Shown here in pieces: positions 1 through 40,700 of a stretch of 64,000 nt of DNA. A program made the translations under genes and the position numbers. Source of the stretch: Oikopleura dioica (lineage: Eukaryota > Animalia > Chordata); NCBI GenBank assembly GCA_907165135.1, contig OU015568.1, positions 4,588,001 to 4,652,000 of the forward strand, read 5' to 3'. How positions within the stretch are numbered: position 1 is the stretch's first letter; each line of letters opens with the position of its first letter. A model generated the notes under the pieces. It was not told the origin of the DNA. It ran no database searches and was given only the letters and a program-made list of their open reading frames with translations.

Positions 1-480
1 TTGAAAGTGAAAAATTTGTGCTATCGTATTGATATAGGTATCATTGAATAGAGAATTTTTCAAGCTCTCAGAAAATATACAGGTCGATATATAAAATCGA
101 AAGTTTGAAAATGACACTTTTTACAGTGCATTTCTATCGAGCCGTAATGCATTAGCGCTGTCAAAGAAACAGTAATATCTCGAGAATCAGATGAGATATT
201 TCAGATCTGAAAAAAGCTCTAGAATCAGCTTCCTTTAATTAACTCAAAAAAATTTGGTCATCAGACTAAGATTAGTCGAATCCGATCATTGGGGACACCC
301 TTAAAATGCGTTTTCTGGATCCTGACTCAGGTTTTCTACACAGGTTGCTGAGCCAAAATAAAAGATAAACTTGCGGTGATTTTAAAATGCAATTGAAGCC
401 GCGCTCGTCGCGGCTCTTTTTGCTGTTTTACTCGAAGCCGCAAGCGGCTTCTCGATTGATAAACTAACGCCATTTTTCAG

Positions 481-2046: not shown

Positions 2047-3434
2047 ATGCCCAGCGGTAGCATTTCCGGCCAATCCTTCCGAACCAGCTATGATTTGGAA
2101 ACCAACGCGTCGACTGTTTTTACCGAAGTTGACGTGGACGCCCTCACGACAGATGAGATTCTAGAGCAAGTGCAGCTGATGAAAGACGACCTCGCCTTCC
2201 TCTCGAAAGAGCTACTCTTCTTGGAAACATTTGCGGAAAAGATTAACCTGGATGGAATACTCCCAACATCAGAAATCGTCGAAAGAACCAGCTCGAGAAA
2301 GAAAAAACGTGGTGAACCGAAGAAAGAAAAGCTTAATTTTGCCCAAAAAATTGAGATCACGATAAGATTGCAAAACGACCTCCTCGGGGAAATGCAAAAA
2401 GTGGAGAAGGCGCATATCTTGGCGAAAGAGCAAATCGAATGCGAAATGAAACAGCTGGAAGAAAGACTCCTCGACATTCACAAGCACGAGTTCGAATTTG
2501 ACCGAGCCGTGACCAGTGTAAAAGGATTTTTGGCTTTTCAAAATTGAAAATCTCTAGAATACGAGTCCAGTATTGTTTCTCCGGCAGTAGGTAGCCAGTT
2601 TATATTTGAAAAGCCAAGAAAAGATGACAAAGGTAAGCGAAATGGGGACAAGTTCATCCGCTTCGAGCAGGATCGTCTTGAAAAACAAGATCTTCAAATC
2701 GGAAAGCTCAAACTTAAACTTCAATCAAACAAAGTTCGAAATCCAAAGAATCAAATCAGTAATCATTTTTTTCAGGAAAACTTGCGACGAGCGAACCACA
2801 GTCTCAAATCAAAGGAGGAATCTGGCGAGACAATGACGAAGATCGACTTTGATCAGCTCGAAATTGAAAATACCGAGTACCAGATCTCCCTTGACGAGAA
2901 AAATAAAGAAATGATTCAGGTAAAAAAATCTTTCTGAAAAAGAAAGTTTGACACTTTTACTAAGGCGAAAATGAAAGCTGGTCGACTGAACGACTCGCTT
3001 CTCAAAAGAAAAACTGATCTGGCAGCGGCTCTCAAGCTTCAAGGTAAATTAACTGACCTTAATCGCTAGAAATTGATCTTCTTTTGCAGTGAAGCTGCAG
3101 CAGCGAGTTTTGAGCATCGTTTCCGACCGAGAAAAGGTTGAAAAGGAATCTCAACTCGTCAAGAAAGACATCGAAAAGCAACGAGAAGGACTTCGAGGCA
3201 TCCGGACTGAGATGAAGTCCTACACCGTGCCGGAAGTCTACGACTATATCAAGCAGTCGCAAGAGACTGATGCGGTAAGACACCCGCGTTTCTTTCTCCC
3301 TTCATTCTTTATTATCTTTCTAGCTTGAAAAAGAACTCTACGAGTGGAAAAGAAAAGTCGCCATCGCCGAAGGAGCCAACAAATCCCTCCGTAGCCAGCT
3401 TCATGCCGCTCAATCTCCCGTGAAAAAGCGCTAG
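2047..3434 (+). CDS. CCDC113: CCDC113/CFAP263-like ciliary coiled-coil protein
   Basis: Exons give KEKLNFAQKIE...KSKEESGETMTKIDFDQLEIEN...VPEVYDYI...LEKELYEWKRKVAIAE, matching the DUF4201 family pattern (DFxQLxIEN; WxRKVxIAE). First intron is GA-AG (2525-2623). Confidence 0.8.
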
Positions 3435-3541
3435 AATCAACAATCTACCCTAGCTGCTCCATTTTAAACTTACTTTACTGATCTTCTCCCTTCGATATAT
3501 AGTTTTCTATTTAATAAACTATTTTTTTTAGAAATCGTGAA

Positions 3542-5688
3542 ATGGGCTGTTATCTACCAAAGCCCAAGACAGAAACAGACCTCGAAGACCTAGAAGGATG
3601 TGGCCTCCGAGTCTCAGCGGGTGCGATGCAAGGATGGAGAATCACTCAAGAAGATGCGCATAATGCTATTGTAAGTCCCTATTAGGGAACCTATTCTGGG
3701 CTCGGGAATCTTATCTTCGCGACTTTCTATTTACACCGGGTATTAAACCCGATCAAATCTTACTGATCGAGTAGTTCTGTTTGTAAAATTTGTTCTAGTT
3801 AGAGCTGATGAAGGATATTTCATTGTTTGCGGTTTACGATGGCCACGGTGGTCATGAAGTAGCAGAGTGGACTGGAGAGCATCTCCCAAAGTCGATTGTC
3901 GAGAAGTTTAAAGACATCAACACGGATGATGTGGAAGAAATAAAGGAGGCATTGAGCATTATCTTCCATGCGCACGGTGGGTTTTTAGAGACGATGTTTT
4001 TCATAAAGCATTTTTCTGACAAATAGACAAGCGAATAACGGACAAAGAAGTGGTCAAAAAGCTCCATGAGATCGCGAAGAAAGATTGCCCAATGCTACGA
4101 GACGAGGAGGAGATGCAAGACGAGGTTAATGAGCTGAATTTGGACATGGAATTGTCGCGAGAAGAGCTTATTGCGAAGTATGGAGGGCCAGGAACCCCAG
4201 TTGGCTTTGAATTGCCGGAGGATGCGTCTGGAGAGGGATCGGTAAAAAGAAAGAATAGAGGAAATAATGATAATTTTCTTCAGTCGGAGGGTATGAAAAA
4301 AGATGCCATAGCACTTGCCCTGGCGATGTGGGAAGAAGCATGCGAGAATGAATCTGATGGATCAGAGGAAGAAGACGAAGAGGCCGAAGATCAAAACGGA
4401 GAAACGGGTGGAAACCCTGTGGCAAAGAGTGAAAGCGATCCGAAAATCGAAAATCTCGATGTCAAGGAAGAGGAAAAAGAGGCAGGGGAAGTCAAGGAAG
4501 TCTCTGAGGACGGCGACGGACGAGCACAAAAACGACGAGCGGAGGAATCTTCTAGCAGCGTTGAGTTTGACTACGTCCCTCCGGCAAGAAAATCCAGAAC
4601 GGAATTATCCGCTGAAGAGCGACAAAAACGCCTTGCGTAAGTTTCCAATTTTGAAATATTGAAGTTTTTAATGAAACTTGTAGCGAGGCAAACAACGAAG
4701 ATGGAGAAGGCGGCGTCGTCTTTGAAGATCATTCCGACGCAAGCTCGACCGACTCTGAAAACTCAGACTACCAGGACATTCCGGAAATAGATCAAAACGC
4801 GGCGAACCAAGAAATTTGTGGACAGGACTCTGGCTGCACCGCTGTGGTCACACTCGTCAATGTATTTTTCTACCCCTTTCATTTCCCTATTGAATCCCTC
4901 TTTCTTTAGCACAAGACGAAGAAGATCATCACAGCAAATATCGGTGATTCCCGAGGAGTTCTTTCTCGCGGCGGGAAAGCTATTGAGCTTTCTTTCGACC
5001 ACAAACCAGAGGATGAAGAGGAGCTCTCGCGAATAAAAGCTGCTGGTGGTTTTCTTACCCGTAAGTTCTTGATTCGTTGTACTCCTCGTTGATTTCATTG
5101 ATTTAGCTGATGGACGAGTCAAAGGCGGGTTAAATCTTTCCCGAGCTTTTGGCGATCACCAATACAAGCAAAATCGAAAACTGCCCCTTTTTCAACAAAT
5201 GGTCACTGCCAAACCAGGTAAAAAAGAAGCGCTAGAATTTACCTTTGAACCGCTTGATTGGTAGATTTTACGGTGCATGACTGGACCGATGAGGACGAGT
5301 TCATGATCATCGCCTGCGACGGCATTTGGAACTCGATGACTTCTCAAGAAGGGGTCGAATTCGTCAGAGATCGAATCCAAAAGGATGTCAAAATGTCGGA
5401 AATTATTCAAGAGCTGTTTGACTTGATTCTAGCGCCCGATACTGATGGCCAAGGATTTCAAAAAGAATAATTAACGATCAATGGCTTCTCTTACAAAAAA
5501 GAGCCAAAAATAAGACCTGAAAAACTCATCTGAAATCCTCGGAAAAAAGTGATGGAACAGGGTGCGATAACATGACCTGTGTGATAGTAGACTTCAAGAA
5601 CGAAACGTACAACCCAGCAGCTGGCCAACCAGTCGTCTCAGAAAAAGTGGACTTCCCACAGTCGCAAGTTCCACGCGAATCTTCATGA
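3542..5688 (+). CDS. PPM1G: PP2C phosphatase with acidic insert
   Basis: [30 protein letters not shown], long Glu/Asp-rich insert, [36 protein letters not shown]. The last intron junction is ambiguous by 1 nt. Confidence 0.92.
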
Positions 5689-6297
5689 AAAAAAGATCTT
5701 CCAGATAAATTTTTTGTTCATCTGTCACTGCACAACACTTACCGAAGAAAAATGGCACCAAAAATAGGCATCAAAAATTAGATAAAATTGAATATCAAGA
5801 TATTTTTGCACACACTGCCGCAGTTTTTTTTATTCTCACAAAACATGTTTATTACTAGATAAATAAAATATTTCATTCAACGAAAAAAACTCAGAGATGA
5901 AATTCAACTCAGTAAATGCTACCTAAATGGTCAAAGCACTGGTCGAATTCCTCGATGTTGTAAATTCATTAAGTAAAAAAAATATTTGAAATTTTCACAA
6001 AGAATTTATTTAATTAATAATTTTTTAATTTTAAAGCGCTTTTTGACTAACAGCCAGTTATGTTCTTTTTTTCTCAGATTGTGGATAATAGGCATGCTTT
6101 TCCTAGTCTATATTATTTTTAAATATTTTATTTTCATGTGCTATAAAAATAAGATATTTAAAAATATAATAAACTCGGGAAAATATGCCTATTATCCACT
6201 ATCAGAGAACGAGAAAAATAATTGGCTGTTAGCCAAAAAGCTTTTTTAAAATAAAGATATTTTTGACGACCCTAAGAGTCGCCCAGGCGTGGACTCC

Positions 6298-6452
6298 CTA
6301 TTGATTTGGCCAAGGATTCACCCGTCGAGCGAGTGGCCCCTTTTTTGGGCAGCGCGCCACGCTGAAAAAAATATTTCAGTTGCTCGGCGGGCGCGTACGT
6401 GACCAATTGGGGCGGCGGCGTGGCTCGTGCGTGGGCGCCACTTGGCCAATGA
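6298..6452 (+). promoter_or_regulatory. GC-rich H2A.Z promoter with multiple CCAAT boxes
   Basis: ATTGATTTGGCCAAG, GACCAATTGG and GGCCAATGA lie in a GC-rich island 110-260 nt upstream of the ATG at 6563. Confidence 0.5.
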
Positions 6453-6562
6453 CCTCGCCGCGCTCCTCGCTCGCCGTGGCTGGCGCACTGCCCTCGATTC
6501 AATCGCTCAATTTTTAACTCGCCGAGCACAACTTTGGCGCGCAACTGAGAGAAATCAAACAC

Positions 6563-7827
6563 ATGTCTGGCAAAGGTAACAGTTTATTTTCATAATTTTA
6601 ATTTTACTTATCAATTTCTCTATGAAAAATTCTCGCCAAATAATGCGAAATAACCCAAGTTTATTGAGAAAAATCATTATTTTTTCCGCGATTATTGATT
6701 TTTAACCCCCGGGGCGGGATATTTGAATTTTCCCGGCACAATTTTCGATACGTGACCAATCATTGTTCACAACTACAGTATCTTACTGTACAGAATCATG
6801 CCCGTTTCTTAATTTTCTAAAGTTAAAGGTATTTGGAAAATCTTATATGAATAAAGAAATTTGAAAATCAAAATGGAAAAAATTGCAATTGAAATTTTTT
6901 TATTAAATTTCTAGTAATTCTAGCTCATTTCTTTTTCAATATTGTCTTGTAGAAAATTTACTCTCAATGTTTTTCTAATGATTTTTCTTGATTAAATATC
7001 CCTGAACAAGAATTTTCATTCGAAAGGAGCGTTCACGATTCGGTCGGATTTGTTAGGAAATTTTCAGATAATAATCATGTTTCTCTTCAGGAAAAGGCAA
7101 AGGCAAGGGAGCCGGAAGTACTGGCGGCAAAGGCGAGGGAAAGTCAAAGAAGAACAAATCGATCTCGAGATCTGCCCGCGCCGGTCTTCAGTTCCCAGTC
7201 GGTCGAATCCACAGACACCTCAAATCCAAGGTAAATCTCTTCCACTCCTCCCCACTCTCTCTACATCCGTCTAGGTACCAGCACATGGCCGTGTAGGCGC
7301 CACATCCTCCGTCTACTCGGCGGCGATCCTCGAATACCTCACCGCCGAAGTATTGGAACTCGCCGGAAACGCCTCCAAAGATCTCAAGGTGATAATTTTC
7401 ACAGATTTCGGAAGTCAAATAAAAACAATTTAGGTCAAACGAATCACGCCCAGACACTTACAGCTTGCGATCAGAGGAGATGAAGAATTAGGTGAGAAAA
7501 ACCTGAAGGAACTTTTCAAATGAAAAGCTGCGTAGCGGCTTTTTTAAATACGAAACCGCGATGATGCAGAGCTTTGCTAAGATTGCAGGACCCTGTTCCT
7601 GACTCAGGATTTCTGCACAGATCCCTTCTTTGAGCTTGAATTTCAAAATTGAAATCATCAACCAAACATTGATCGATCAGCCAGTAAAGTAACCTCATCC
7701 TTCAGACATGCTGATCAAAGCCACCATCGCTGGAGGTGGTGTGATCCCGCACATCCACAAGTCGCTGCTGGAGAAATCGCGGCCGAACACCGATGGCGTC
7801 ATGGCACCTCCCCAGCCACCCCAATAG
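6563..7827 (+). CDS. H2AZ: histone H2A.Z
   Basis: 5 exons: [88 protein letters not shown] (H2A.Z-diagnostic). Ends ...[11 protein letters not shown]. Confidence 0.95.
7495..7622. mobile_element. degenerate CTGACTCAGG-family MITE in H2A.Z intron 4
   Basis: AAAACCTGA...AAAAGCTGCGTAGCGGCTTTT...CCTGACTCAGG...CACAG. Confidence 0.6.
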
Positions 7828-8007
7828 CTACACCCCCATTTTGCTTTTTTCTCACTGCCTGCGCAGTTTCTCGCTGTTTTAACTCGAAAAAAATTATGGA
7901 AAAAAAATAAAACTCAGCATCAGATTCTCAGGAATTCAAATATCCTCATTTTACTTGTTTTTTTTTATGCAGGAAAAAATGAAAGTAAACTGTAAAGAAA
8001 AGCTAAT

Positions 8008-8190
8008 TCAGGCTCTTCTGAAGAGTCTAGACGAAAAGCCGCGTAGCGGCTTTTTTGAAAAACGAAGCCGCAAGCGGCTTCGCCAGAGTTTGGAAATCGA
8101 CTGACACTGTTTTGCGGCTTCGTTTAAAAAGAGCCGCTACGCGGCTTTTCATTTAACCCTTCAGAGACTGCTGCAGGTTGGACAGCTCGC
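8008..8190. mobile_element. degenerate CTGACTCAGG-family MITE
   Basis: Internal hairpins AAAAGCCGCGTAGCGGCTTTT, AAGCCGCAAGCGGCTT and the mirror copy GCCGCTACGCGGC. Confidence 0.6.
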
Positions 8191-8311
8191 GGCAGGAAGA
8201 CATTTGCCAAGCATTAAAACTTATTTGAATTATAAAATTAGCGCTATTTGCTTTTCATTTTTCGTTATCCGCCCCTTTCTTCTGGTCGGATTCGTAAGAA
8301 ACCAGAGAATA

Positions 8312-11290
8312 ATGAAGCTCTCGCAGAACCTGTTCCTTGCTGGGAGCGCTAGAGCTCTGATTGATGCGGTTCCACTGACCGGGGATTGTGTGGTAGATGA
8401 GGCAACGATGAAGGAAATTGGGGTGAATTTTGATTGTCAAGGAAGTCGAAAGGTAAAGATCGTCTTTGGCATTTTCAAACATAATTTCCAGAAGCGAAGG
8501 GATGAGGCCCTCGATCAAAGCGTCTCGATTTCCCTCGGCTCTGATGGATTTGTTTACATCACTGGTTGTATTGCTGAAAGTCCTGAATTAGACGTGATGC
8601 ACTGTGTTTTGGAAATGCGAACAAACTTCGAGTACACTCCGCATTTGAGCTACCTAAACGTCAACGACGATTACTACTACGTCTTCTACGAGGACTGGAA
8701 CAAGACGGACAAGCTTTACACATTCAAATTCCAGCACAAAGACGGATTCGAAGACAGCATCCTCGTTTCGCATGTTCCAAAGGACGAGGAAGCGCGAAAT
8801 GAAGTTGTTTCTTCTTGCATGCTTTTGTCTGAGAACGATTACGCGTGGGGAGGGAGCTCTTTTAGCCAAAGAATGGATGGCGGCGTTCATACGAATCCTG
8901 AAATGGGCCCGGTTCCCTTTGTGCCACGGGATACCTTCCTCATCCCTTTCGTCGGCAACGGTGGGCTCATCGAGCCGTACTGGATCGGACAAAGCAAGAT
9001 GGGAAGTTGGTCGGTTCTCGTCGATCATCGCTCGCCTATTCCGCTCTCAAGCTCGGTTCGGCCTGGGGAGAATGGAATCAAGACCGAATTATGCATCTTC
9101 TCGGACTACCAAGACTCCGAATTCGACAAGCGATCCTCTGAGCCCATCCTGCCCCTGGAATACTACGTAACACTCGGTGCCGATGCTCGATCCGTTCAGC
9201 GCTCGTTTCAAAAGACGGTCAATAAACCCACTGAGCTTCCGGAGCGATCGATTATTTACAACCCGATCTTTTCATCTTGGGCGATTTACAAGAAAACCAT
9301 CAACCAGGAGAAGCTGGAAGAGTTTCTTGACGAAATAACGAGCAATGGATACACTGCTTCGAATGTTGAAATTGATGATGGATATGAAATTGCGTATGGA
9401 GATCATGATTTTGACCCATCAAAAGTAAGAACGCTTGGCAACTTGTTTGGAAAACCTGAGTCAGGGTTCTGAAAAAGCTCAAATGAAAAGCCGCGCAGCG
9501 GCTTCTTTTAAACAAAGCCGCAAAGCGCTTTTCGCCTTTTCAAGTAATTTTAGTTGTTGATTTGGCGAAACCGCTCCGCGGCTTTGTTAAAAAAAAGCCG
9601 CTGCGCGGCTTTAACCAAAGATTTTTTTGAACCCTGACTCAGGTTTTGCAAACAAATTGTCGAGCCAAGGGATGAGTAATTGAGCTAAAATTCTAGCAGA
9701 AAGTTTAGTTCTCCGATATCTCTGGCTGGATTGAAAAAGTTCATGAAGCAGGATCGAACGTCACTCTTTGGGTGACTCCCTTTATCAACCCCCCTTCTGA
9801 GAATTTCGAAACTGTTTCGGAAATGGGATGTTTTGTCAAAGGAGAAAGAGAGAATGGAGAGGAGTTTGAGATTGTTCCTTGGTGGGATGGAGTCGGTAAG
9901 CAATTTTTGTTGAATAAGAGAAGATATTTCTTTCAGGCGGCATGGTTGATTTTACTGATGCCATTTGCGCCAACTGGTTCACAAATCATTTGCAAGAAAA
10001 ACTCGACAAGCACGGATTCGACGGTTTCAAATTCGACGCTGGAGAGACCAACTACATGGCGAGCAATTTTAAAACGCGAGGAAATGTTCTTCGATCTGTC
10101 GATTGGACTCGAGCTTATGACAAAACCATTGCGGATAATTTCCCGGGCATTTCTGAAGTGAGATCGGGTTGGGGAAATCAGCATTTGGCGATTTGGATGA
10201 GGATGTTTGACAAGGACTCGAAGTGGGGAAGTGATAATGGATTGCAGACTATGGTGCCGCATTTGATTCTATCTTCGCTTATCGGGTACCAGGTTTGGTA
10301 ATGATTGAAATAGGCAAAGTCTGAGGGGAAAATTTAGTATATTTTGCCAGACATGGTCGGTGGAAACGCTTATGAGGATGGTTTTGAAGGAACTTATGTT
10401 CCAGAAGAAGAATTGTATATTAGGTGGATGGAAGTTACTGCATTCATGCCTTCGATTCAGGTTGCTTATTCGAATTTTCTTAATAAAAGGAACCATAAAA
10501 ATAGTATTCAATTCATCTTTCTGAATTTTTTTTTGATACAATCTAACTTGGTTACATATCGTCATTTCACTTAATTGCTTCACCATTGTCCCTATTTCTT
10601 TACCAAAATTTCTGTATAAACATATTTTATGTTCAATTAAGTTCTCACTTTCACCCTGGCAATACGAAAATCCGTCAACCCGTCAACTCTGTAAATACTG
10701 GACCGATTTCCATCACGACATCATCGCCCCTCTTTACGAACAAGTTTGGGAAGACTACATCGCTGGATCCGAAATCCTCCCCATTGCTCCGGTCTCTTAC
10801 CTCGCTGAGAAAACCGAGCTCTCGAAGGAGATTTATGAACTGACTCAAAGCTGGATTATTGGCGAAAAGTATCTTGTAGCTCCGAGTGTAACGAAGGGAG
10901 AGAGAATGATGATCGTTTATTTACCAGGAAAGCGGGCTTGACACTTTGACCTGAGCTCGGTAACCTGTGAAGAAAACCAGACTGAGGGTATAGAAGATCT
11001 CAATTAGAGATTCTCTAAGGAAAAGCCGCGTATTCTTGCGAAACCGCTTTGCGGCTCATTTTTAAAGAAAGCCGCTAAGCGGCTTTTCCTTAAAGATCTT
11101 TCAGACCCTGAGTCAGGTTTTCTACACAGGTTGCCGAGCCTAGACTTCGACAAATTCATTGAGAAAGCCCGGAAAAGGACGAAGCCTGCTCTGGAGAAAT
11201 TATTTCACAGATGAAATTCGCGTTGGCGGACAATTCTACACCCTGCCTATCGGTTTGGAAGAAGTTCACTTCTGGGAGCGACTCGAATAA
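8312..11290 (+). CDS. glycoside hydrolase family 31, MYORG/KIAA1161-like
   Basis: [42 protein letters not shown] (nucleophile), [54 protein letters not shown]. The last exon needs a GA-AG intron at 10928-11177. Confidence 0.9.
9433..9667. mobile_element. CTGACTCAGG-family MITE filling GH31 intron 1
   Basis: Inverted arms GGCAAC-AAACCTGAGTCAGGGTTC and GAACCCTGACTCAGGTTTT-GTCGAGCC, with paired GCCGC/GCGGC hairpins. Confidence 0.75.
10953..11141. mobile_element. CTGACTCAGG-family MITE inside the last GH31 intron
   Basis: GCTCGGTAACCTGTG...GACCCTGAGTCAGGTTTTCTACACAGGTTGCCGAGC. Confidence 0.75.
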
Positions 11291-11318
11291 AATAATTGCA
11301 ACTGTGACAAATATTTAT

Positions 11319-13600
11319 TTACAAACAAGGAATTCTTATAAAAATCATTTTCTGTCCCTCTTTCACTACCACCTTTGGCTTTTTCGTGGTAGGACTTGTT
11401 CTGTTGGAGTTACAGGGGCTTTCCGCTTGGCGAACAGTATCAGTTTGTTTTCTGTTTCTCCGGATGTGGGGGAGGACAGACGAGGCAAGTTCTTTCCGGG
11501 CAGATATTCTGCGATTTTTCTGACTTTCTTTTTGATTTTGATGAAGTGCTTCTGTTTTCAAATTGTCAGATGCAGGGTCAGAATATTTCGTGACAGGGCG
11601 ACTTCGAATTATCTTTGTTTCAAGGTCTAAATTGCCCAAAAAAGGGAAAAACAGTTTTTTGACCTATTCTTTGGATTATAATTATATTCATCGATGTTCG
11701 ACGCGTCCATGTTATAGTTGCCAAGACATGAGTAACTCCGGTCAGAACGGATGGCCAGGTCCCGTAAAGGCGAGCTCGATGGGGGCTCCATTGATGAGGG
11801 TATCCTGAAAAGGGAAGTGAGTGAAAGAGACTCCATGGGAAGTGCGGCGGGATTTTTTGTTTGGAGGGAAACTGTATCCAAAATGAGAGAAAAATTCGAA
11901 TCAGCTTCTCATTAGATACACTGAATCGCTTCTATCAACGAATATCAAAAGTACTACCGGGGTACTACTAGTAGCCTACAACAAGTACTAATCCTGCTTG
12001 TAGGCGTCGTCCCTAACCCTAACCCTAGTCATTTTCTAATTTTTTCAAGGACAAAAAAAGGATTATAAATAGCTCACCTGAGTCGTAAAGACAGGGGCAC
12101 ACGAACGGGCTTATCCGGCAATTTCTGGCCAAGGACGACCTGAGACTGTCTTCTTCTTCGCGGCATAGTGGTTCTTATCTCGGGTAAACGACTGAGCCTG
12201 ACCCAGTGGGGCTTGGTGAAATCTCTCCTGCCCGCCCTACTCATATTCTTTTTTGTTCTCCTTTTTAATCTGCGCTGGATTTTTGAGTCTATCGAGTTTG
12301 TCGCTCAATTACGGCGCCGTACTGACACTGGGTATACTATTTAAAGAGGTGCATGTCGATAAAGTGCCACGTTCAAGATTTGAAACAGAGAAATTTGCAT
12401 TTTTACGACTTCCGGAAAGCTCCTTTTTCTCAAGGAAAATCTTGGTCAAGGCTTTCTCAAAAAGAAGAAGTTTCAATCAAGTCGATAAAGTAGCCGTAGG
12501 TCGATAGAAAAGTTGACTTTGAATATCTTTCAGTACTTGGGGTCGCTGAAAATCAGAGACTAATCAAGACAGAAATCTATTTGCACGGGAGGTGATTGTT
12601 TCCGTCAAAACATCAACTTGTCAAATTGTAACTAAGAAGCTAAAAGAATCGTATTTTCAAAAATGGGATAACAATTCGCGAAATCCTTTGCTCCTCAAAA
12701 TCTTATGTCAGTACATTTACAGTCTTTTAAAAGCTTATCTTCCTCTGTCAAGTGACCATTGACATGCTAATCGTTGTATCTATTCGCTCTTGATCTGATA
12801 AGAAGTCCCGAAAATCTTCCCGAAAGTGCATGAAAAACTCACTTATCCTCCCGCAAATATAAAATCAGTCAAACAAGACAAAAAGTGCTGAGCGAAACAG
12901 AACAAACCAGGAATTCAAGTGATAGCAAAGCTGCGTTGGGCCAGGAGGGCTACTTGAAACAATCCGGGATTTAAAATCATTTTGTCCATGGGAAAATTTC
13001 ATCGTTGGTTTACTCGGGACCTGGATCGATGGAGGGTTTTTTCGGGTGGCAGGTCTTCGACACCAGTCCAGAATCGGATAAATTCAGGCTTTTGAAAGGT
13101 AATTCATCTGAATGATTTGAATTCTTGATATATATTTTTTAAAAATACTATATGAGATAGCCACTACTAGCTTTACTTTATAGTTATATTAGTTTATAAT
13201 ATTCTAATATGGTTCTTCCGTATAACACAATAGATTGTTACATTCCTTCAGGATAAACCTAATGAAGTAAGATCTTTACTTCATGGCAAAAAACTAGTCT
13301 TACGGTCCGCTGAAAAATTCTCTAGAAAAAAAAGTTAACTCAGAGATCATACAGACTGTTGCCTATCTGTAAAAATTCTTTTTGTCGGTAGTCTATCGGC
13401 GATAGGCTCTTAGTATTATTGAAACCTTTTCCTCGTGTCCCAAATCAAGCGAATATCTTGGTGTCATGGCTCTCAGATCAGATTTGCTCCGATTAATCAT
13501 ATCTGCGTGTAACATTTGATCGTCTGATAATGCGAGCTTTTTCTGATGTTTTTCCTCTTTTGAAGGAATTGGCGCCGTGTGTATCACAACTGTAATTGTC
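11319..13600 (-). CDS. possible divergent multi-exon gene encoding a basic low-complexity protein; structure unresolved
   Basis: Several open frames bounded by plausible GT/AG sites (11319-11625, 11665-11805, 12080-12245, 13410-13590). No recognisable homology. Confidence 0.3.
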
Positions 13601-14137
13601 CTTCAAATATTTGTGATTGGATTGAAGATGGCAGTTCTTGTCTCTACATTGCACATCCTGAATTTCTTTTTCTGACCAAATTCTCAGAGGTCGTAAAAAT
13701 TAAAATGCTAAATTTTTCAATATAATTTATAAATTGTTAATTTGAACAATGATCGGAAGCCCCTATGAATTTGATACCGGTAGTCACTTTATTAATTTCC
13801 CAGGGAACGGAACAAAAGAGCAGGTGACTATATATTTATACTGTTATTGAAACATTCGAGCAATAAACTCGATCATAGAATCATATTTTTGAAAAAGGAG
13901 GAATTTATTGGACAGAATTGAAAGGAAAATTTTTTCAGGGATGAAATTCGTAGTAAGATGGTGCCAAAGAAATTCGCTAAAGAAAAATATCATTCAAAAA
14001 ATTATCAAAAAAATTTCAAATCAATAATCGAACATTTCGCCAGGCACAATCAAATCTCGTCTATACCTGTATTGAGATTACTAACTCTGAAATACAAAAT
14101 CAATATTAAAAAAATAAAAGAAAAAGCACCTCAAAAT

Positions 14138-16300: not shown

Positions 16301-17291
16301 AGAACCGCATTTCGTTAAAAACTAAATTTGTTGTGTTTTCGCTCCTCACTACGCTTTAGCAAGAACCCTTTTCAACCCTGTGAATGGGCCCCTAGGCAGA
16401 ATTTCCCAGAAAGAGTTCAATTTTTCAAGCTGAGCAAAACGGCACTTGAATTAAAAAAACGAAGATTTTCAGAACCTGATGGTACTGTAAACAGTGTTCT
16501 GTTTACTTCTGATACAAAAGAAGAGGCAGCAGGTTAATCGAATTGAAATTTGCATAAATCTGCTTTTCAGGGCAGATGTCTTGTTTTGGCGAAAAAAAAG
16601 CCTAAAATTCGGCTTGGTTCTATTAAAAAGCGTGTCCAAAAGGTCTTTTTGAGAGTCTATTGAAGCCAAGATAAAAAAAAAAGAAAGAAATTAGAAGGGA
16701 TTAAATATTAAGAGGCGGGGTAGTATCCAGACTGTAAATAAAAGTCCAGTCTTTTGCAAAATTAATGCATCGATTCTTGATCAACTATCGACAAGGTGTC
16801 GTAGTTATGGGGGACGGTTTCACTTTAAATTGAGAGATGGCTTTCCCGCCGATGGAAAAGGATTAGATATAAAACAGCTTTCTATAATTCTTTTCTTGAA
16901 ATCACCGAAAATAATCCTAAAAAAGCTACCTGGGCTAGTATAACTGTCCATATCATCATTACGCTGACTGCTATTCTCGCTTTTTCTGGAATCATAATCG
17001 TCCTCATCGTCGTCTACAGTGTTTTATCCTCCCCAGATGAAGGAGAGTCCTCTTCCCTCCGCCGAGAGACTGTGACAAGTAATGTATCTGCTGGCGATTG
17101 CGTGCATTTCAGAAGAGAATAAGCGATGCAAAGAGAAATAAACTGCCATAATTTCAAAATAAATGAATTATTTTAAAAGCATTTTTTAATGAAATATTTG
17201 GTTTATTAGAATATGAACAAGGGAGGGTGGGAAACTTATTTTTTTCCGAAAGTGTACAGAAATATCGATAATAGAAGATGAGGCTAAATTC

Positions 17292-19556: not shown

Positions 19557-22500
19557 TTAATTGTTTTCGGAAGTGTCCATAGCGTTGGGGTTCTTTTTCA
19601 GCATCACAAAGCCTTCTAAAACAGGCGAGAGGGGAATATATTCGTCCGTCGCCAGTTCCGCTCGTTCACCGTAGCTGAGAAGGACGGGAGTCGTTCGCGT
19701 TTGGAAGCCAGTGATAGTCTTCGGCTTACCGGCCTGAAAAAGAGTTCTAAAGTGGGCGCTGCCGCGAGTTGGTCTTTTTGAAAGAATAAATTCCGCTTAG
19801 AAACACTAGCCGTCGCGCATGTCACCAAATTGCTTTTGTGGCGTACAGACGCTTTCGCGGGATAAGCTGAGGTTAAAAAATCTGACTGTGGGTCTCAAGC
19901 GGATATAAACTTAAATCTCGTTAGTCCCTAACAAAAATATACGAGAAAGCGAAAGGGTTGAAAAAGCACTTGAAATTTCAAGTGTTGTAAGCCTTGGAAT
20001 TCAATACAAGGCCTGAAATACAAAGAAACATAAGTAGGCTACTTGGAAACAGGGGTATTTTTACTGTTCTAGTTCCTACCTGACCAACGACGTCAACAGC
20101 TTGACCAACTCGGACAGAAACTTGCATTGGTTTGCTATCCTCGTCCAGACAGACCAATAATCGGGGCTAGAATTCGCGGGATTAATCAGGTTTTGAAAAT
20201 GAAAATACCTGAATAGCTGGAACAATGGAATATAAAAGATAATGATGCTTTCCGAGAAGAAGTCCCTTTGGATCAAGAGCAGCAACAACTGTCGAAATTA
20301 AACCAGCAGCGGATGATACGTTGAGAAGAGTTCGATCCGAATGGAAGGGCTGCAACGTCATCGTTCCTTTTCCCAAGTGAACGAGACCTTGTGATCGGTT
20401 TCAAATTGAATTAGAAAGTTTGTTTTAGAATCAAAAAAGTATTTTAATGATCATTTCGAATTCTCGCGGGTCTAACACATGATATTAATTGACATGAGAA
20501 TGTGACAAATTTTTACGCTAGAAAACACTGATTTGTGGCCCGGACCAGAGTTGGTAAAAAAGTATACTTCACTCGCCCTTCAGAATGAAGTATACTTCAT
20601 GAAGTATACTTCAGGGCGTTGCAGGGCGTTGAAGGGCGTGAAGTGTACTTCCGCCCTACCCTCTACTTCAACCGCCCTTCCGCCCTTCACTCTACTTCAA
20701 CTTGGTTCTGTCGGCCATCAGAATCCATCCGCCAGAATTTTTTCAAATTTTGCGCTTATTGGCTCTCAGGCGCCATGATTTAAATCACGCTGATTGTGGC
20801 AGATGAACCGATAGCTGAAGTATACTTCAGGGCTTTGAAGGGCGCGTGAAGTACACTTCACCGCCCTTCAAGAATGAAGGGCGCCCTGCAGATTTTTGAA
20901 GGGCGAGGGGAAGTATACTTTTTTACCAACTCTGGCCCGGACAGCGGTTAATTCTAGCGGGTGAAATACCAATTTTGATTGGTTGATCTTTTGTTGTAGA
21001 TGTCCTGATATTTCATACAACTTTCTCGTTTCAAAGCCAATTACAGTCGACTCTGGCAATTACGAGCCTTTTTTTGTCGGGAATTTCGTGAAATACTCGT
21101 AATTCTCCGAGTTGGAAAATGTGGCTCGATTTTCTCTCGATTTCATTTTTAAGGACCCCCCATCAAGAATTGCGAAAATGGGCCTCCTTGAAGTTAGTAT
21201 TTCTCCGAAGCTATCTTATTTACACCCTTAATTTAATTGGAACTCGAATTTAACACTCGAATACAACCGCTTCCCTTATGATGATCCCGAAAATCACGGT
21301 TGTTCAAAAATCTAGTTCTACCTCCTCAATGATATACAGGCCGTTAAAGATCAGGTTGATAGGATCAAGCTTTTTCAGGGATTTAAGCTGAGGGAAACCC
21401 TTAATTTTTTTCAGGAGAGAGCTAAGGCTCTTAGCTACCACCGTACTCCTTTGGAAAGTTTTTTGTCAACGAAAAATTAAAATAATATTCAGAGACTTTC
21501 ATAAAAAAAAATGCAAATTTTCAATCTGTTGAAGCTGCTTTAAAACCATCTGAAGAGCCGGAGACTCTTAAGCCAAAGATTTAACCCGGTTACAGGCGCG
21601 TGGCCGTCTCACGGCCACGCGTGGAAATGAGTAGCCAATCGCATGCCCGGATCCATGTTTTCACTCAATCACAGACAGGCAAAAGCGTAGGCAAAATCGA
21701 CCACCCTGTTAGCGGGTTAATGATTAAAATCAAGCATTCTCAATTTTTTCGAAAAAAATTATTTTCGGTCGATGATCCCTTGTTTTCAAAATTGGCGGGT
21801 TTTTGTCAAAATACTCGTAATTCTGCTACTCGTAATTGCCAGAGTCGACTGTATCTCGCAGAAACAAGGACTGATTTATGACTTTGGCTTGAAATTGAGT
21901 CCCCGCTCATCGCGTGATACATCGTTGTAATTTCTAAACCGGTCCTTGGGCAAGTCTGACCATCATAAGTGCATTAGCATCTTTTTGGTAAAACAGAGCA
22001 AGCTGCCTGAGCATTTGCGCCAATCTAGCGTTGTTCGTTCCCGATCCACAGAGACCCATCGCAAAGATCGCTAGAAATTTCAATGAAAAAGGGAGGTTAA
22101 GACGAGGGTCTTACAATTGTATGCGACTTCGGCGTCAGAGTCGTGGGAGAACTTAGAAAGAGTGTCGATAATGTTCATTTGTGGATTTGAAATTGAAGTC
22201 AAGGCGATGGCGAGTGGAACTGCTCGGCGAAGAGGAGGTTCTCCGTATCGTAGGAGGTGGCCAAATGTTCGGAAGGACATTTCGCTAGAAAAATACGTGA
22301 CCATCGATTCACCTTTTCATCACTTACGATCCAATGTCTTCGCCCATGGCGATGAGAGCAACACCGATCGCAGCAATAGCTTGCTTGTGAAGTCGACCAT
22401 CTTTTCGATCCTTTTCTTTTTTCTCCTTTTTCTTTTCTTTTTTATCTAAAGAGAAAGTTCACCAAGGCATCAGTTTAAAATTGTTAATTATTTCCGTTGA

Positions 22501-25327
22501 AAACATCTTTTCAATCATCTTTTAAAAATATAGGACCAAATATTTGAGGTAAAACATTTCGGAAAACAAACCAAAAGACTTTTAAAAAGCTCGAAAAACC
22601 AACTGTTTCATGTAAAAATACAGGCCCGAGGAATGCTTTCATTAAGTTTTTAGATAGGTCTTAATCTAATAAGAGCCGCTTCGTAAAACATGAAAACAAG
22701 CCCTACTTTTTCTCTTGAACAGTATTTTCTTCAGTTACCTTTTTCCTTCTCCTTTTCTTTCTCTTTCTCCTTCTCGTCCTCTTCCTTTTCTTCCGGCTTT
22801 TCAGAGCAAACATGGAGCATCTTCTGAATCTTGAGCACGTTGCCAGTGCCCGCATATGCGCAAACTTCAACTAGAATCGTGGCAAAGCTTCTAAGTGGCT
22901 CAGGAACGACTTCCAACGCGGCGATAATCGTTTCCACAAGATCCTGTTTTTGCAAGTAGCAGAGGCCAAGTGCAAGGGCGAGGAAACGAGCGTGCGTTTC
23001 CTTGAGATTGGACTCGGACTTTTCGATAAGAATTTGAAGAATGGCTGTAGTAACGTCGCCATTACAGCTTCCCACAGCGATAAGACCTGTAAAAAGACTG
23101 TAATAAACTGAAAGGATTTCGAAGAAATACCAAGTGCAAGAGCACAACAGCCAATTTCTTCCATGCTCGACTTTTGGTCATGCAACTGCTGGAGAAGAAT
23201 CTGGATAACATCATCTCTGTTGGAGCCGCAGTAGGCAATACCAAGACCGAGAGCGCATCCGCGGCGGATTACCAGCGAGCTTGAGGTGACATAATCTGAT
23301 AAGAGCGCAAGGGCGGGATCGCACTCGTTTCTAAATTTCAATGTTTATTTCGCTGGCGGAAACGATTTGTTTAATAAAAACTGGTTGTTCTTTGAGTAAA
23401 TTAACGTCTGAAAGATAATCTTGTGAGTTTTGACCAAGTGGCTTTTAGAAAAAAGAACTTACGCTAAATACGTAAACAGTCTGCTAGACAAATACTGTGA
23501 CGTACCTAATTCCAGCATTGACAATTCCACATGCCAGCAAAGCTCCAGCCTTGATCTTATCTTCTGCGGAATAAAGATGTTTATCAATAGAAACAAGACC
23601 ATTGTCGACATCCCAGAGGAGGATCAAGCCAAGAGAAGCCGTCGCAGCAATCATGCCGTGATCCTTGTTGCTCCAGATCCAACTGTTGCTGCCAGAACTG
23701 TCTGTGTCAGTTGTCAGAAGCTTGTCAGTTCCGAATCCACAGTTGACGAAGCCGTTGACGTAGGAAGAGGCGAGGTTGGCGCGGGCGGAATCGATGTTGC
23801 TGGTGAACTTGTCTAGGTCGGACTTGTAGATGTCTTCCGGTTTCTTTGGCTCCATGATGTCCAGTTCTCTGGCGAGCCCGAGGAAGTTGCCGGAGAGATG
23901 GGAGTTGGACATGGTCTCAGCAAGGTCATCAACGTCTGGAAGTTTCTCTGGAAGATCAACGAATCGCTGCTGTCGGCCGAGAATGTAGCAGCATTGCTTG
24001 AGAATAGAATTGTCCTTGCATCGATCGAAAATGTCTAAAATGACATCTTCGTCGTTGAGTTGAAGGGCGACGAACATCGCTTCTGTGAACTTTTCGAACT
24101 TGAGGTAAATCGCCAATGCCGTCTTGAGAAGAGTGGTGTTTTCTGGATCAGGGGTGTAGGGAACGCAGGACTTGAGATAAAGAGTGACCTTTTTGTAGGA
24201 TTTTGTGTCGCACGCTTCGACGAGCAAATCGAGTCGTTCGATTTCCATGAGCATGTCGGCCGCGTCAGTTTCGGAGTTGTGCGTCATGTCGTAGGGGAGG
24301 ATGATGTTAACGAGTCGAAGAAGGTCTTCCACATCTGCTTCGGGGTTTTCGGCAGTTCGTTCTGTCCATTCAGCGGCGACTTCTCCCGCTAGATGGCGGA
24401 TGTATTCGTGTCCCCATTCGCCAACACCTTCTGTTGGGCCGACAAGTCTGTATTTCAAGCAATCGCGGTTCTCGGACATAACCATTGCCAAACAAGAAAG
24501 AACATCAGCGCAAAGGAGTCGGTTGCCCTCACCCTTCATTTTTTCATAAGCGGCGACGATGGTTTCGTAGTGTTCGCGAAGGAATTTGAGGGGCTTGGGC
24601 ACGCTGGTGAGGGAGGAAGTGGCAGTTCGGATTTTGGAGCGGAGGATTTCGAGGGCGCCTTTGTACAAGGTCTCGTCATTTTCTGTCAGTCGGGTGACGC
24701 AAAGGTTGAGCTCTTCCCTGAAAAGTTTTAGTAAAAAAAAGTAAACAATGACTGTTTTTCCAATTCCAATAAAAAGTGCGATCTACGGTTTTTCTTATTC
24801 AAAAGTTTTGAAAGGTTTCAAATCGCATGCAGTTGTTTGATGCATTATCGTATACTTGAGGGCCTCTCCTAGATCTCAGACTGAGATTCCCAGAAGCGAG
24901 TCGAAGAAAGTTCCGGGATAGATTTCGGGTCTTTTGATTTTCTTGAATAATCACAGATGACTGACCACATTGTATGAAAATGCAGTCGCGAGAAGCGCGC
25001 AAACAATTCCGGACAATGTGGCGGAGGTGCTTTACGCCGTCTACGGATGTGGCCACGCATGTTATAATACAAGAGTGCCTAAACCGGATGGCAGCGTAAG
25101 GATGTCGTAAAAATTAGCTATTTGATATTTGATGTTGAATATAGTTCCCACGGAAGATTTTTTAAAATTAATAATTTATAAAAAAATCATTAAGTAGCTT
25201 ACTTGAGTTCTCTGTCCTCATCATTCAACTCATTTTCCTCTGGAATTCCCGACTCTGGCTTGTCCTTTTTATTATCTGCAACTTTATCATTTGCCTTCTT
25301 ATCAGCTGCAGTTCCCTTTGGAGCCAT
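19557..25327 (-). CDS. PSMD2: 26S proteasome subunit Rpn1
   Basis: [103 protein letters not shown]. Confidence 0.95.
20546..20934. mobile_element. non-autonomous hAT element (389 bp)
   Basis: TIR CAGAGTTGGTAAAAAAGTATACTTC; 8-bp TSD GCCCGGAC at 20538-20545 and 20935-20942; internal GAAGTATACTTC and CGCCCT repeats. Confidence 0.9.
21044..21851. mobile_element. TA-flanked Tc1/mariner-type MITE (808 bp)
   Basis: TIR CAGTCGACTCTGGCAATTACGAG; TA on both sides (21042-43, 21852-53); no ORF. Confidence 0.85.
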
Positions 25328-37340: not shown

Positions 37341-37378
37341 TTGGCGCGCTCCACTGGGCGCGAAAAAAGCGACCAATC
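37341..37378 (-). promoter_or_regulatory. E2F sites plus CCAAT box upstream of POLA1
   Basis: TTGGCGCG (37341), GGCGCGAAA (reverse complement TTTCGCGCC) and GACCAATC, about 210-245 nt upstream of the ATG. Confidence 0.6.
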
Positions 37379-37772
37379 GAAGCTGACTGAAAAAAACGGT
37401 CAATATTTTTCGACCACGAGCTAACCCTAACTACAGTGTACGGGTAAAAGTACAGGTAGTTGGGCAGAATGATGGAATCGCCTTTTATTATTAATTAAAT
37501 TTTATTAAAATATTTCGTTAAAAATTTTTTTTCATTTTTCTGATTTCATCATTTTAAATTTTTCCGAAAACGAATTCTTGCACTTGAATACTTAATTTAC
37601 AGTATTGACAATACTGACATTATTTTTGATTTTGATTGTCTGAGTCAGATCGATTTTAAGTCTTGCTGAAATCAAGGAAGATTTCCAAAGAAGTCCTTAT
37701 TCCTAACTAAAGTCAAATTATAGCTTTTAAAAATTTATTGAAACATCAGAAAGAATGTACAGAAAGAAAGAA

Positions 37773-40700
37773 TCAAGGCTCGTTCTCTCGCCAGATTGTG
37801 ATTTTTCCGCCGGATATTAGACACATGAATGGTTTTCCTTCTTGATCTTTTGGGGACAGAATCATCGGCTAAAATCATGTCAAAAAAGAAGAAAATGAAA
37901 TGAGAGTGTGCATGAAATCAAGGATGATTCTAAGTGAGAGTCTGCTACAGATATGCTTTTCTACAAACTACAGTAACTTCAGTACAAGCAAGAGTACGAA
38001 GAGCATCAAAACTTTCGTATTCAAAAAGCGAAAAAGCGAGCGATATTTTACCGGACATTCGCCGCCACCCTCGACCCAGTCTATCAGACTTTCATATTGC
38101 GTCGGGTAGACTCTGCGCAACTCAACCCCTTTTTCTCGCAATTTCATCTGTATACTCGCAAAACTCGGGTTCAAAAACAAAAATTTCGATTAAAAAATGT
38201 GCAAAATTTTGAAGATTGTAAAGATTTTAGTGAACCCTTCCGAAAGCTACGTTTCTATCGGATTTCTCGGACTTGTAATTTTCGGTTAGTACTGGTATTG
38301 GCTGGAAACAGCGTTAATAAGGAAAAGATGGAGATACCTTTGAACTATACTTGAACGACTTTTTGAAGAGTTGAGGAAGTGTGACCTTTTCGGATTTCGA
38401 CGAAGCGGTCTTGAGGTCTTTTCATTCGAGAGCCAGTTGAGACGAAATCCGAGTTTGTTCTAAAAAGGAATTTTTGTGTGGTAGACATGAGAAGTCTCGA
38501 CTTTGTCTGGCAGACGGCTCTGGTCTACCAGACTGCTTGTAGGTTGAAAATTTTACCTGTAAGGTCGGCTATGCGCGAGTTTTTCCATATTCGTTATTCT
38601 CAGCATGACATCAACAAGGATTTCATCTTAAAAATATTGGCTTTTTTATCAATTGAAATTTCCTAACCATCGAGCGAATATTTATCCGCAATTGCCGACA
38701 TCTCCGGATCGAGCTCAGACTGCGGCAAATACTGTGGCGTCATTGAAAGAGCAGCAAACCCGCGCTAGAACATGTATTTTTGGCGCTAATCCAAAAATAT
38801 CGCCCTTACCAAAACAAATTCTTCAGCTTCTTTGATGCTGCTCACGACTACTCTGACGGCGCCGCGTCCTTTTGACCGCTCTTCTTTCGCCACTGTTTGA
38901 AAAGTTACTGTATGCTTACGGAAGGGGAAGCTTACCGATTTTGGAGAGTGAGTGCATCATGAGCTGGGAATGGTTGATTTGGTGAAGGATCAGTTTTGCG
39001 AGAGAAGCTGCTTTGGCGTAAACGCATTTGTCCTTGTGTTTGTGCCAGTGTTCGGCTCGGCATTCCTGTAATTACAGTTATCCAAGTATATACGATCACA
39101 TCAGAATGATTTTCAGAAATATCTTGAAGATTATTATAATAATTGTCAATTTTCATTAAGGATCCCCCCTCAAGAGGGAATGACTTTTTCAGACAGCGAT
39201 TTTGGATTGATCCCCTTAAGATTTCCATAGAAAATTTTGCTCAGAGTGTAGCCCGAAAGTTGATCGAGGGAGAAAATAAAGCTGTTCTTATGATAAAACT
39301 CAGAATTATGGTCTTTCGAGACAAAAGAGCATCGACGTCAATTGGCCTACCTTTGTACAATAGAACGTCACACAATAGCGACAAGACTTGTATTGCGCTT
39401 TTGCTTGTTTCAGCGTCGCTAGAATTTCAATTTCAAAATCCCCTCCTTAGAATCTCAATAACCTTGATTCGAGCAAGCAGAGTTTCGACAAATGAGCATT
39501 GGCTCTCTGCTGGAAACGCAAAACATTCTCCCGGCTCCCCCATTGCTCGAAATAGTCGACACGCGATTATCAGTATTTTCAGCTTTTTGCGATGGTCGGA
39601 CATTTGTCCTCATCACAGCTGGCGTGGAGTAATCGGCGCCACTTTTCGGCCGTCGAGAAATTGGATTCGAGCTCGGCGGTGTCGAGTTTTCTAAATCGCT
39701 CTTCGAAGATTGATGCGAGTGGCCACCTGTTGACGATTTGTCTGTGTTTCCTAGTCGATGAGAATACTGTATGTTCGTTTCTTTGAGAGGAGCATACCTT
39801 GACTTCTGTTGAGAAGCTTCATCAGGGAGGATTGAGCAAGAAGGGTGACATTGTCGTTTGAGGTTCGAGGAGGTGGCTGGTCCGAACGGTGAGTAGGACG
39901 ATTTGAGGTCTTTGGCTCGGTTGTTTTCATCGCTAAAGATGATTTTGATCGATTTTTTACAATCTGACGACCTCTGTGAACGGTAGTTGGGGGTTCTCCC
40001 TAGACCTGCCCCTACCCCTGGACCACAGGGGCCCCTAAGGCCAAAACGCGCCCCCCGGATACCCCCTCCAGCAGTACCCACTTCTTAACCCTAATCTTCC
40101 CCCTAAGGTTAATTACCTTGTCTTGGTGATTTCTTGACATTATCGTACTCTGAGCTGACCAAACTCGTCTTTGAACTAAAATTCGACTTCTTCAAATTCC
40201 CAAGGCTCGAATAATTCGCTCCCTTTGCCGAATTATTCGTTCCATTGAAATTGCCATTCGCGAACAATGGATCACTCTTTGGAGCACTCGTCGAGGGAAG
40301 AGTTCTGTAGCCAGGAAAGAGTGCTTCGTGTGCGCTTTTGCGATTTTCGGGAGATGGTTTTTGGGAGGTTTTGGATCTCATCGTTGCGCGCTCGATTATT
40401 TCAGAGTCGGAGCGGCGGGGCGATCGAGGAGTTGAAGATTTGAAGGAGTTTTCGATTTCGGAAAAAAGGTCGGGGTTGCTGGCATTCGCGTTTTTCTGCG
40501 CTAGAATTTCAAATGAATGAAGTTTTTGATTTTCAGATCGAAAGGAAGAAATGATTGAGCTTGGCTCAGAAACCTGTGCGGAAAACCTGAGTCAGGCTCT
40601 GAAAGATCACCAATGAAAAGCCGCGTAGAAATTTCAAATTCGCGGCTTCGTCCTAAAAAAGCCGCTATGCGGCTTTTCATTAGAGATCTTTCAGACCCTG

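Follow-up and report, generated by a model that had tools for sequence, protein, structure and literature searches.

The window analysed here, a 64-kb stretch of Oikopleura dioica contig OU015568.1 (assembly GCA_907165135.1, positions 4,588,001 to 4,652,000), belongs to the Okinawa lineage of this species complex and carries genes for MCM4, POLA1, PSMD2 (identified as RPN1 by Pfam) and a MYORG-like GH31 protein, besides three genes whose names (CCDC113, PPM1G and AJM1) are putative labels from an earlier first-pass annotation. Ten introns of these genes start with GA, GC or GG instead of GT, and most of them possess a short helix whose arms adjoin both splice sites. The orthologous copies from other lineages retain such a helix, with arms that differ in sequence and are still complementary. 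This between-lineage conservation of terminal pairing, with covariation, is the main new result.

Introns of the G[ACG]-AG type make up ~11-12% of O. dioica introns in both the Okinawa and the Bergen genomes (PMC8008620, PMC7072748), and the introns of the window belong to this known set. Whether OdB3 has the same introns is, according to PMC8008620, a matter for further scrutiny. O. dioica does not have the minor spliceosome, and a paper of 2026 calls it unclear how the conserved 5' end of U1 could bind such divergent introns (PMC13326754). The recognition of 11-12% non-GT introns by the single spliceosome of this animal is a question dating from 2010, and a position-conserved, covarying helix beside both splice sites is a concrete cis-element that can be tested in a cultured model allowing embryo injection.

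Ten non-GT introns in the window

The introns had been picked by eye in the first-pass annotation. Each of the ten introns has G[ACG]..AG ends on the strand that had been proposed (seven GA, one GC and two GG), and exon-terminal AG precedes 10/10 of them, both as claimed. The introns and the arms of their helices are as follows (MITE, miniature inverted-repeat transposable element; TIR, terminal inverted repeat).

2525-2623, + strand: GA-AG intron of putative CCDC113; arms 2530-2542 and 2605-2617, 13 bp; 3' tail GAAAAG.
5454-5549, + strand: GA-AG intron of putative PPM1G; arms 5452-5460 and 5531-5539, 9 bp, beginning 2 nt into the exon.
10928-11177, + strand: GA-AG intron of the GH31 (MYORG-like) gene; arms 10933-10939 and 11165-11171, 7 bp; a MITE (~10955-11139) lies within the loop.
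20388-21944, - strand: GA-AG intron of PSMD2/RPN1; arms 21936-21941 and 20396-20401, 6 bp; two TIR elements lie in the loop.
25666-25767, - strand: GC-AG intron MCM4a; arms 25755-25763 and 25674-25682, 9 bp.
26681-26862, - strand: GG-AG intron MCM4b; arms 26853-26859 and 26686-26692, 7 bp.
28394-28679, - strand: GA-AG intron MCM4c; arms 28672-28677 and 28401-28406, 6 bp.
28828-28896, - strand: GA-AG intron MCM4d; weak imperfect stem with core arms 28890-28893 and 28835-28838.
32108-33449, - strand: non-autonomous, putatively hAT-like element that interrupts a POLA1 exon, taken as GG-AG intron 32108-33438.
38164-38236, - strand: putative GG-AG intron of putative AJM1; arms 38231-38237 and 38167-38173, 7 bp, beginning 1 nt into the exon.

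The MCM4 and GH31 introns are backed by RNA or annotation. The annotated protein g9698 (P0148) of the Okinawa assembly OKI2018_I69 threads 8312-11287 without mismatch, including the exact GA-AG intron 10928-11177, which assigns the window to this lineage; an MCM4 exon matches O. dioica proteins at 94-100% identity. For MCM4, RNA-seq runs X2 and X5-X7 (labelled as the same species) were mapped to 24500-30400. Most reads show <90% identity and thus come from another cryptic O. dioica lineage; being divergent, they confirm the positions of junctions and say nothing on the window lineage's own splicing. Their joints fit the four MCM4 introns, two exactly (26680>26863 for MCM4b and 28827>28897 for MCM4d) and two approximately (loose ends compatible with MCM4a, and a joint adjoining MCM4c that differs by 4 nt in the other lineage); three GT-AG joints were seen too. 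Furthermore, an environmental mRNA contig without introns (L009) contains exact 40-mers spanning the orthologous junctions of MCM4 a, b, c and d. The Bergen MCM4 reference protein threads the syntenic Bergen locus (L005), where a, c and d correspond to GA-AG introns and b to a GT-AG intron. The removal of these introns from RNA is precise. The AJM1 intron is the weakest member of the set: its joined frames comprise just 25 + 64 open codons, for which searches gave neither a Pfam match nor an orthologue. A Bergen orthologue of the GH31 gene was sought and not found.

The introns were compared with the Bergen reference and a second haplotype (L005 and L006, with POLA1-MCM4-PSMD2 synteny), Bergen-like metagenome contigs (L001, L002), two more lineage samples (L007 and L010/L012), a near Okinawa-like variant (L011), a contig covering the CCDC113-PPM1G region (L008; protein identity 81%) and two more distant larvaceans (L003 and L004; protein identity 84% and 80%). 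Across lineages, the exons are ~76-84% identical at the DNA level.

Intron calling via open frames and codon usage was noisy, giving 31 plausible GT-AG introns and recovering only 3/10 known non-GT introns. As this was too noisy to list non-GT introns in an unbiased way, annotation-threaded and RNA-supported introns were used. A model-free scan (AG|G plus a 7-mer, followed within <=2 kb by the reverse complement and AG) yielded 1231 matches versus 1026 in shuffles, a background that is too high. The duplex energy of the 25-nt intron ends separates the classes poorly, because pseudo-introns alone reach a median of -7.9 kcal/mol. We therefore used a position-constrained helix statistic, i.e. the longest perfect helix that starts at -3..+5 from the 5' site and ends 3-10 nt before the 3' site. 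The controls were 28 exactly placed GT-AG introns and 20,000 pseudo-introns with AG|G[ACG]..AG borders.

Terminal helices and their covariation between lineages

In 8/10 window introns, both splice sites are adjoined by a perfect helix of 6 bp or longer, whereas the probability of such a helix in pseudo-introns is 0.021 (0.008 for at least 7 bp). In the exactly placed GT-AG introns, the median helix is 3 bp and only 3/28 reach at least 6 bp (Mann-Whitney p = 6e-4); a looser repeat measure gives the same contrast (median 7 vs 4, p = 2e-5). Perfect terminal inverted repeats of 6-19 bp are present in 9/10 introns. The first-pass annotation had described repeats of 7-13 bp in nearly all of them, which is right as to their presence and slightly generous as to their length, because only 7/10 reach at least 7 bp. 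The occasional stems of GT-AG introns show no conservation between lineages.

The same contrast appears outside the set picked by eye. Ten orthologous copies, none of which had been part of the first-pass annotation (from Bergen L005/L006, L007 and L008), have helices of 5-9 bp (p = 3e-5 against the GT-AG introns), with a 5' offset of 3-5 and a 3' spacer of 7-9, apart from one copy at offset -1. Annotation-derived sets, i.e. six GH31 introns of the window and ten MCM4 introns of Bergen, behave likewise.

The helices are accompanied by a common arrangement of the intron ends. The modal spacers are 3-4 nt on the 5' side and 7-8 nt on the 3' side (ranges -3..5 and 3..14), and introns shared between lineages typically start as AG|GAAC and end in a tail such as ACAAAAG or GTAAAAAG. 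Exon-terminal AG precedes 19/20 stem introns compared with 12/28 GT-AG introns, and all 20 stem-intron copies begin with G and end in AG. The acceptors had been called purine-rich and mostly devoid of a pyrimidine tract, and most of the introns longer than GT-AG introns, and both descriptions hold: the count of A at -8..-3 has a median of 3-4 in stem introns versus 1 in GT-AG introns (p = 4e-7), that of pyrimidines at -17..-3 a median of 6-6.5 versus 9.5 (p = 3e-6), and the median length is about 142-150 nt versus 46.5 nt. Canonical U2-type signals were not found in the window introns, as the donors are GA, GC or GG, often within GAAC, with poor complementarity to U1 in place of GTRAGT, and there is no pyrimidine tract. 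In minimum-energy folds, the terminal stem closes 8/9 short members, for example the CCDC113 intron (z = -2.8). The case is nevertheless founded on the position of the helix and on its covariation rather than on its stability.

Seven of the ten introns could be compared between lineages, and 7/7 occupy identical sites in other O. dioica lineages (up to four samples). Their interiors have diverged to the point that BLAST finds no similarity between lineages, and the lengths of orthologues differ up to 17-fold: the PSMD2 intron measures 1557 nt in the window, 213 nt in L006 and 90 nt in L007, MCM4c 286 and 1113 nt, and the CCDC113 intron 99 and 159 nt. Each orthologous copy retains a helix adjoining both ends; the arm sequences differ by lineage and their complementarity is kept. 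The MCM4a stem is GGTTCAAAA/TTTTGAACC in Okinawa, CCGTTTTAA/TTAAAACGG in Bergen and CGTTTGAA/TTCAAACG in L007, that of L010 being one pair longer. The MCM4b stem reads AGGGATA/TATCCCT in Okinawa, GGGTTTT/AAAACCC in Bergen and GGGTTTT/AAAACCT with a G.U pair in L007 and L010. In PSMD2, CGGTTT/AAACCG (Okinawa) corresponds to GGGTT(T)AAAA/TTTTAACCC (Bergen) and to GGGTTAA + AACTG (L007). The Bergen orthologues of MCM4c (1113 nt) and MCM4d (73 nt) are both GA-AG introns, with the stems CAGTTTA/TAAACTG and CGGAA/TTCCG, respectively. In L008, the CCDC113 orthologue (3406-3564, 159 nt) retains a 9-bp stem with one G.U pair, and in the PPM1G orthologue (6794-7015, 222 nt) a bulge of 1 nt divides a 6+6-bp stem, the exon ending in TG.

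The first-pass annotation had advised a search for compensatory changes between Oikopleura populations, and such changes are indeed present: the arms change yet stay complementary, in introns whose interiors cannot be aligned. Arms of the same lineage pair over a median of 6 bp, compared with 4 bp in cross-lineage chimeras (p = 3e-4, or p = 3e-5 when Okinawa is set against the rest), and the corresponding duplex energies are -10.0 and -6.3 kcal/mol. When five MCM4a sequences were folded together with RNAalifold, the terminal stem was the sole consensus structure, with three pairs changed on both sides and 0/8 core pairs broken. Between Bergen and L007, an unambiguous T:A to G:C exchange occurs within otherwise identical arms. 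In L011 the loop has accumulated many substitutions and the arms none, and a flanking U.G has become C:G by a T>C change, which lengthens the helix. The stems are real and class-specific and have apparently been maintained, and the stem itself appears to be under selection.

The donor dinucleotide is less constant than the helix. MCM4a starts with GC in the window and with GA in Bergen, L007 and L010, and MCM4b with GG in the window and with GT in the same three samples, where the stem is present as well. The claim that the class is set by its non-GT donor had therefore to be given up, because MCM4b is a GG-AG intron here and a stem-bearing GT-AG intron elsewhere; it is the stem that marks the class.

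As a separate observation on MCM4b (26676-26867, - strand), RNAalifold on four lineage samples also pairs CAGG of the 5' junction with CCTG at the start of the downstream exon in all four, which may be due to chance.

Age and origin of the introns

Neither of the more distant larvaceans (L003 and L004) has the introns MCM4 a, b, c and d or a 686-nt GT-AG intron (27348-28033), whereas the small, stem-less GT-AG introns 28218-28260 and 25945-25990 are common to the window and L003. The absence of MCM4 a-d is consistent with their gain within the O. dioica complex and does not by itself reveal the mechanism of that gain. L003 has an MCM4 GA-AG intron of its own (5670-6231), at a position where O. 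dioica reads through without an intron; it shows a bulged terminal helix of 10 pairs and a TAAAAG tail, and the class may accordingly reach beyond O. dioica.

The POLA1 member is a recent insertion. Its TIRs (33423-33441 and 32122-32140) are 19 bp long and begin with CAGGG, a perfect 8-bp target-site duplication (TSD), GTGGAGAG, is present at 33442-33449 and 32114-32121, and the insertion site is empty and colinear in both Bergen haplotypes. The repeat begins at -3 and stops 14 nt before the acceptor, so that the donor lies inside the TIR. With the splice sites proposed in the first-pass annotation, the mRNA would be 3 nt shorter than the uninterrupted reading. No transposase was found in the element, and its features suggest that it is hAT-like. 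It contains a tandem array (32489-33190; 56 bp x 12.7, 98% identity), each unit of which has its own GGGCCGT/ACGGCCC inverted repeat.

A transposon origin is evident for POLA1 alone. The earlier suggestion that all these stems are eroded transposon ends applies to this element, with its TIR, TSD and empty site, but the other nine introns have no TSD around their stems (at most 2-5 nt of a purine run are shared between exon end and intron end), and no further copies of their ends were found within the 64-kb window and the fetched loci. In this comparison, only the MITE nested in the GH31 loop proved to be repeated. In the GH31 and PSMD2 introns, the stems lie outside the nested elements and are not their repeats. 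A transposon origin of the older stems is plausible, and the helices may have begun as transposon terminal repeats. The nested elements and further copies of the GH31-loop family are the following.

10955-11139, 40555-40729, 43442-43550, 44996-45110, 9433-9531, 9565-9669 and 7987-8087: copies of the MITE family found in the GH31 loop.
20540-20940: nested element in the PSMD2 loop, with terminal inverted repeats of 31 nt (97%).
21042-21853: nested element in the PSMD2 loop, with terminal inverted repeats of 25 nt (100%).

The GH31-loop MITE has TIRs of ~35 bp (GCTCGGYAACCTGTG...) and internal AAAAGCCGC...GCGGCTTTT palindromes, and at least 8 further copies exist in the window. The family occupies two introns of the GH31 gene. 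The PSMD2 elements account for the 1557 nt of this intron in the window as compared with 213 and 90 nt elsewhere. The loop therefore tolerates insertions.

Two neighbouring features may be added. A tRNA-Val(AAC) gene (30874-30946, - strand) lies within a GT-AG intron of POLA1, and its sequence is 92-97% identical in Bergen loci, far more than the surrounding intron. At 25330-25610, only a few hundred bases separate the end of MCM4 (near 25606) from the PSMD2 coding sequence that follows it on the same strand; this very tight arrangement, possibly operon-like, is retained in Bergen.

A proposed role of the helix and its relation to known introns

The class is real, and we consider it probable that these are young introns specific to the O. 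dioica complex, with a common architecture in which the helix brings weak splice sites together and serves as a ruler. On the 5' side, an exon-terminal AG is followed by an intron G (usually GA, often GAAC), a spacer of 3-4 nt and a helix arm of 5-13 bp; in the middle, a loop of ~40 nt to 1.5 kb accepts later MITE insertions; on the 3' side, the complementary arm is followed by an A-rich spacer of 5-8 nt that ends in AAG. Formation of the helix would leave about ten unpaired nucleotides between the two splice sites. The 5' site could then be recognized at a set distance of a few nucleotides ahead of the helix and the 3' AG at a similarly short, set distance beyond it, the helix substituting for a strong U1-complementary donor and for the polypyrimidine tract. 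With the helix present, position +2 of the donor would be free to drift between GT, GG, GA and GC. The helix would be needed for splicing, and the single U2-type spliceosome would presumably remove these introns.

A number of points weigh against this proposal. The intron set consists of ten non-GT introns of one 64-kb window plus ten orthologous copies, and the lineage comparisons are mutually non-independent. The arms form short, AU-rich duplexes (-6 to -15 kcal/mol), and z-scores for the folding of whole introns are modest (-2.8 to +0.8). The MCM4d stem is imperfect and only 4-5 bp long, and it is missing from the minimum-energy fold of the intron as found in the window; POLA1, PPM1G and AJM1 differ in geometry, as their helix begins within the exon. 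The tally of compensatory changes varies with the alignment register: when pairs were counted with shifts of +/-2, 87/113 were kept, against 75.5 +/- 2.9 under a null that is too permissive, two-sided changes were not significant (p = 0.12), and the automatic alignment of MCM4b gave one compensatory pair only. In addition, the positions from +4 onward are paired and would have to be opened for the contact of U6 with the 5' site. Finally, the U1 small nuclear RNA of larvaceans bears N6-methyladenosine (m6A), and others have suggested that this modification is what allows unusual donors to be read (PMC13326754).

The alternative that fares best is that the helices are neutral relics, i.e. TIRs left over from old MITE or hAT insertions that have no role at present, in introns removed by a permissive spliceosome that tolerates G[ACG] donors. 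POLA1, with its 19-bp TIR, 8-bp TSD, empty Bergen site and donor within the TIR, shows this process under way, and the same origin has been reported for introns of Fritillaria borealis (bioRxiv 10.1101/2025.08.15.670264; PMC11282704). Neutral repeats should, however, decay together with the intron interior. The interiors are beyond alignment, yet each orthologue keeps a helix in the same place with different complementary arms, and the kept helices therefore weigh against this explanation. Moreover, nine of the ten introns have neither a TSD nor further copies, and the stems of GT-AG introns are not conserved. We regard neutral relics as unlikely.

The helix may also have been selected for a purpose other than splicing, as a mirtron-like small-RNA precursor, a protein-binding hairpin or a means of controlling intron retention. 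Structural conservation alone does not reveal what a helix is for, and many intronic microRNAs exist in O. dioica. Such a purpose is nevertheless improbable: stems of 5-13 bp around unconserved loops of 40-1500 nt are unlike pre-miRNA hairpins and do not turn a whole short intron into the pre-miRNA-like stem of ~20 bp or longer that characterizes a mirtron, and the fixed distances to both sites, the weak donors and the lack of a pyrimidine tract all point to splicing.

About equally improbable is a non-spliceosomal, structure-measured removal like that of the nonconventional introns of euglenids, for which the G..AG ends would be incidental. The geometry of the helix, with spacers of 3-4 and 7-8 nt, is near the Euglena arrangement 5'-N3-helix ... 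helix-N5-6-3' (PMC12501133), and the lack of a pyrimidine tract and the poor complementarity of the donors to U1 would fit as well. In contrast, G at +1, the 3' AG and the exon-terminal AG are near invariant (19-20/20), MCM4b starts with an ordinary GT in three lineage samples, and the sequence rules of Euglena are not kept: CAG..CTG occurs in MCM4c only, and the exons that follow the introns open with a, t, g, g, g, c, a, t, t and c, so that the purine expected there is not a rule. The G*-AG introns of O. dioica have reportedly been attributed, by Denoeud in 2010, to one permissive U2-type spliceosome.

That the class is merely an artefact of chance or selection bias is very improbable, even though ten introns of one window were chosen by eye and unbiased intron calling was too noisy, since a 6-bp helix was seen in 8/10 introns against a per-intron null of 0.021 and the pattern recurs both in ten orthologues new to the first-pass annotation and in annotation-derived intron sets.

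If true, the reading of the helix as a ruler would explain how exonic transposon insertions last until they become permanent introns. It offers a route from insertion into an exon to a fixed intron, on which the POLA1 element would represent an early stage. In practice, gene finders for larvaceans could place non-GT introns by the stem together with the A-rich tail.

Stems that aid splicing are known from yeast introns, in which a bridging stem between the 5' site and the branch point shortens the effective distance. These stems link the region of the 5' site to the branch point in long introns with consensus signals and do not join both splice sites, as the helices described here do.

Closer to O. 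dioica are the MITE introns of another larvacean, Fritillaria borealis. As summarised from Henriet et al. 2019 (PMC11282704; bioRxiv 10.1101/2025.08.15.670264), they are likewise recent and lineage-specific and have non-GT donors and terminal inverted repeats. Their removal is ascribed to a U2-type spliceosome in a genome that has no minor spliceosome; POLA1 is a direct parallel. The Fritillaria introns differ in having AG-AC or AG-AT ends, YAY repeats, splice sites located in TIR + TSD and a pyrimidine tract that is mostly kept, with a duplicated U2AF implicated. In O. dioica, the ends are G[ACG]-AG, the covarying helix lies 3-4 and 7-8 nt inside the intron, the tails are A-rich, and 9/10 introns have no TSD. 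The introners of Amoebophrya, a dinoflagellate, also have complementary ends (8-20 nt) and a predicted hairpin joining the exon borders, and a minority of canonical introns there share these features (PMC7789003). They belong to repeated families with direct repeats of 3-5 nt and variable or uncertain borders (PMC7789003), whereas the borders in O. dioica are fixed (G..AG) and neither a repeated family nor direct repeats were found among the sequences compared. Terminal repeats in non-canonical introns are thus known from both Fritillaria and Amoebophrya. For O. dioica, the reports consulted on G[ACG]-AG introns do not mention terminal pairing, fixed spacers, an A-rich tail of the class or covariation; pairing and covariation are new here, apart from any earlier mention that Denoeud 2010 or Henriet 2019 may hold.

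The nonconventional introns of euglenids are the most similar in geometry, as their splice sites lie at short fixed distances from an end-to-end helix and conventional donor and pyrimidine signals are absent (PMC12501133; PMC12621601). They differ by a CAG/CTG-type motif, a purine that opens the next exon and terminal dinucleotides that are not conserved (PMC12501133; PMC12621601). It is possible, if short of probable, that O. dioica possesses a chordate counterpart that arose by convergence, in which a helix used as a ruler would set both sites (at ~3-4 and 7-8 nt) and replace U1 complementarity together with the pyrimidine tract. Larvacean introns would in this way be tied to those of euglenids and of dinoflagellate parasites, whose definition rests on structure.

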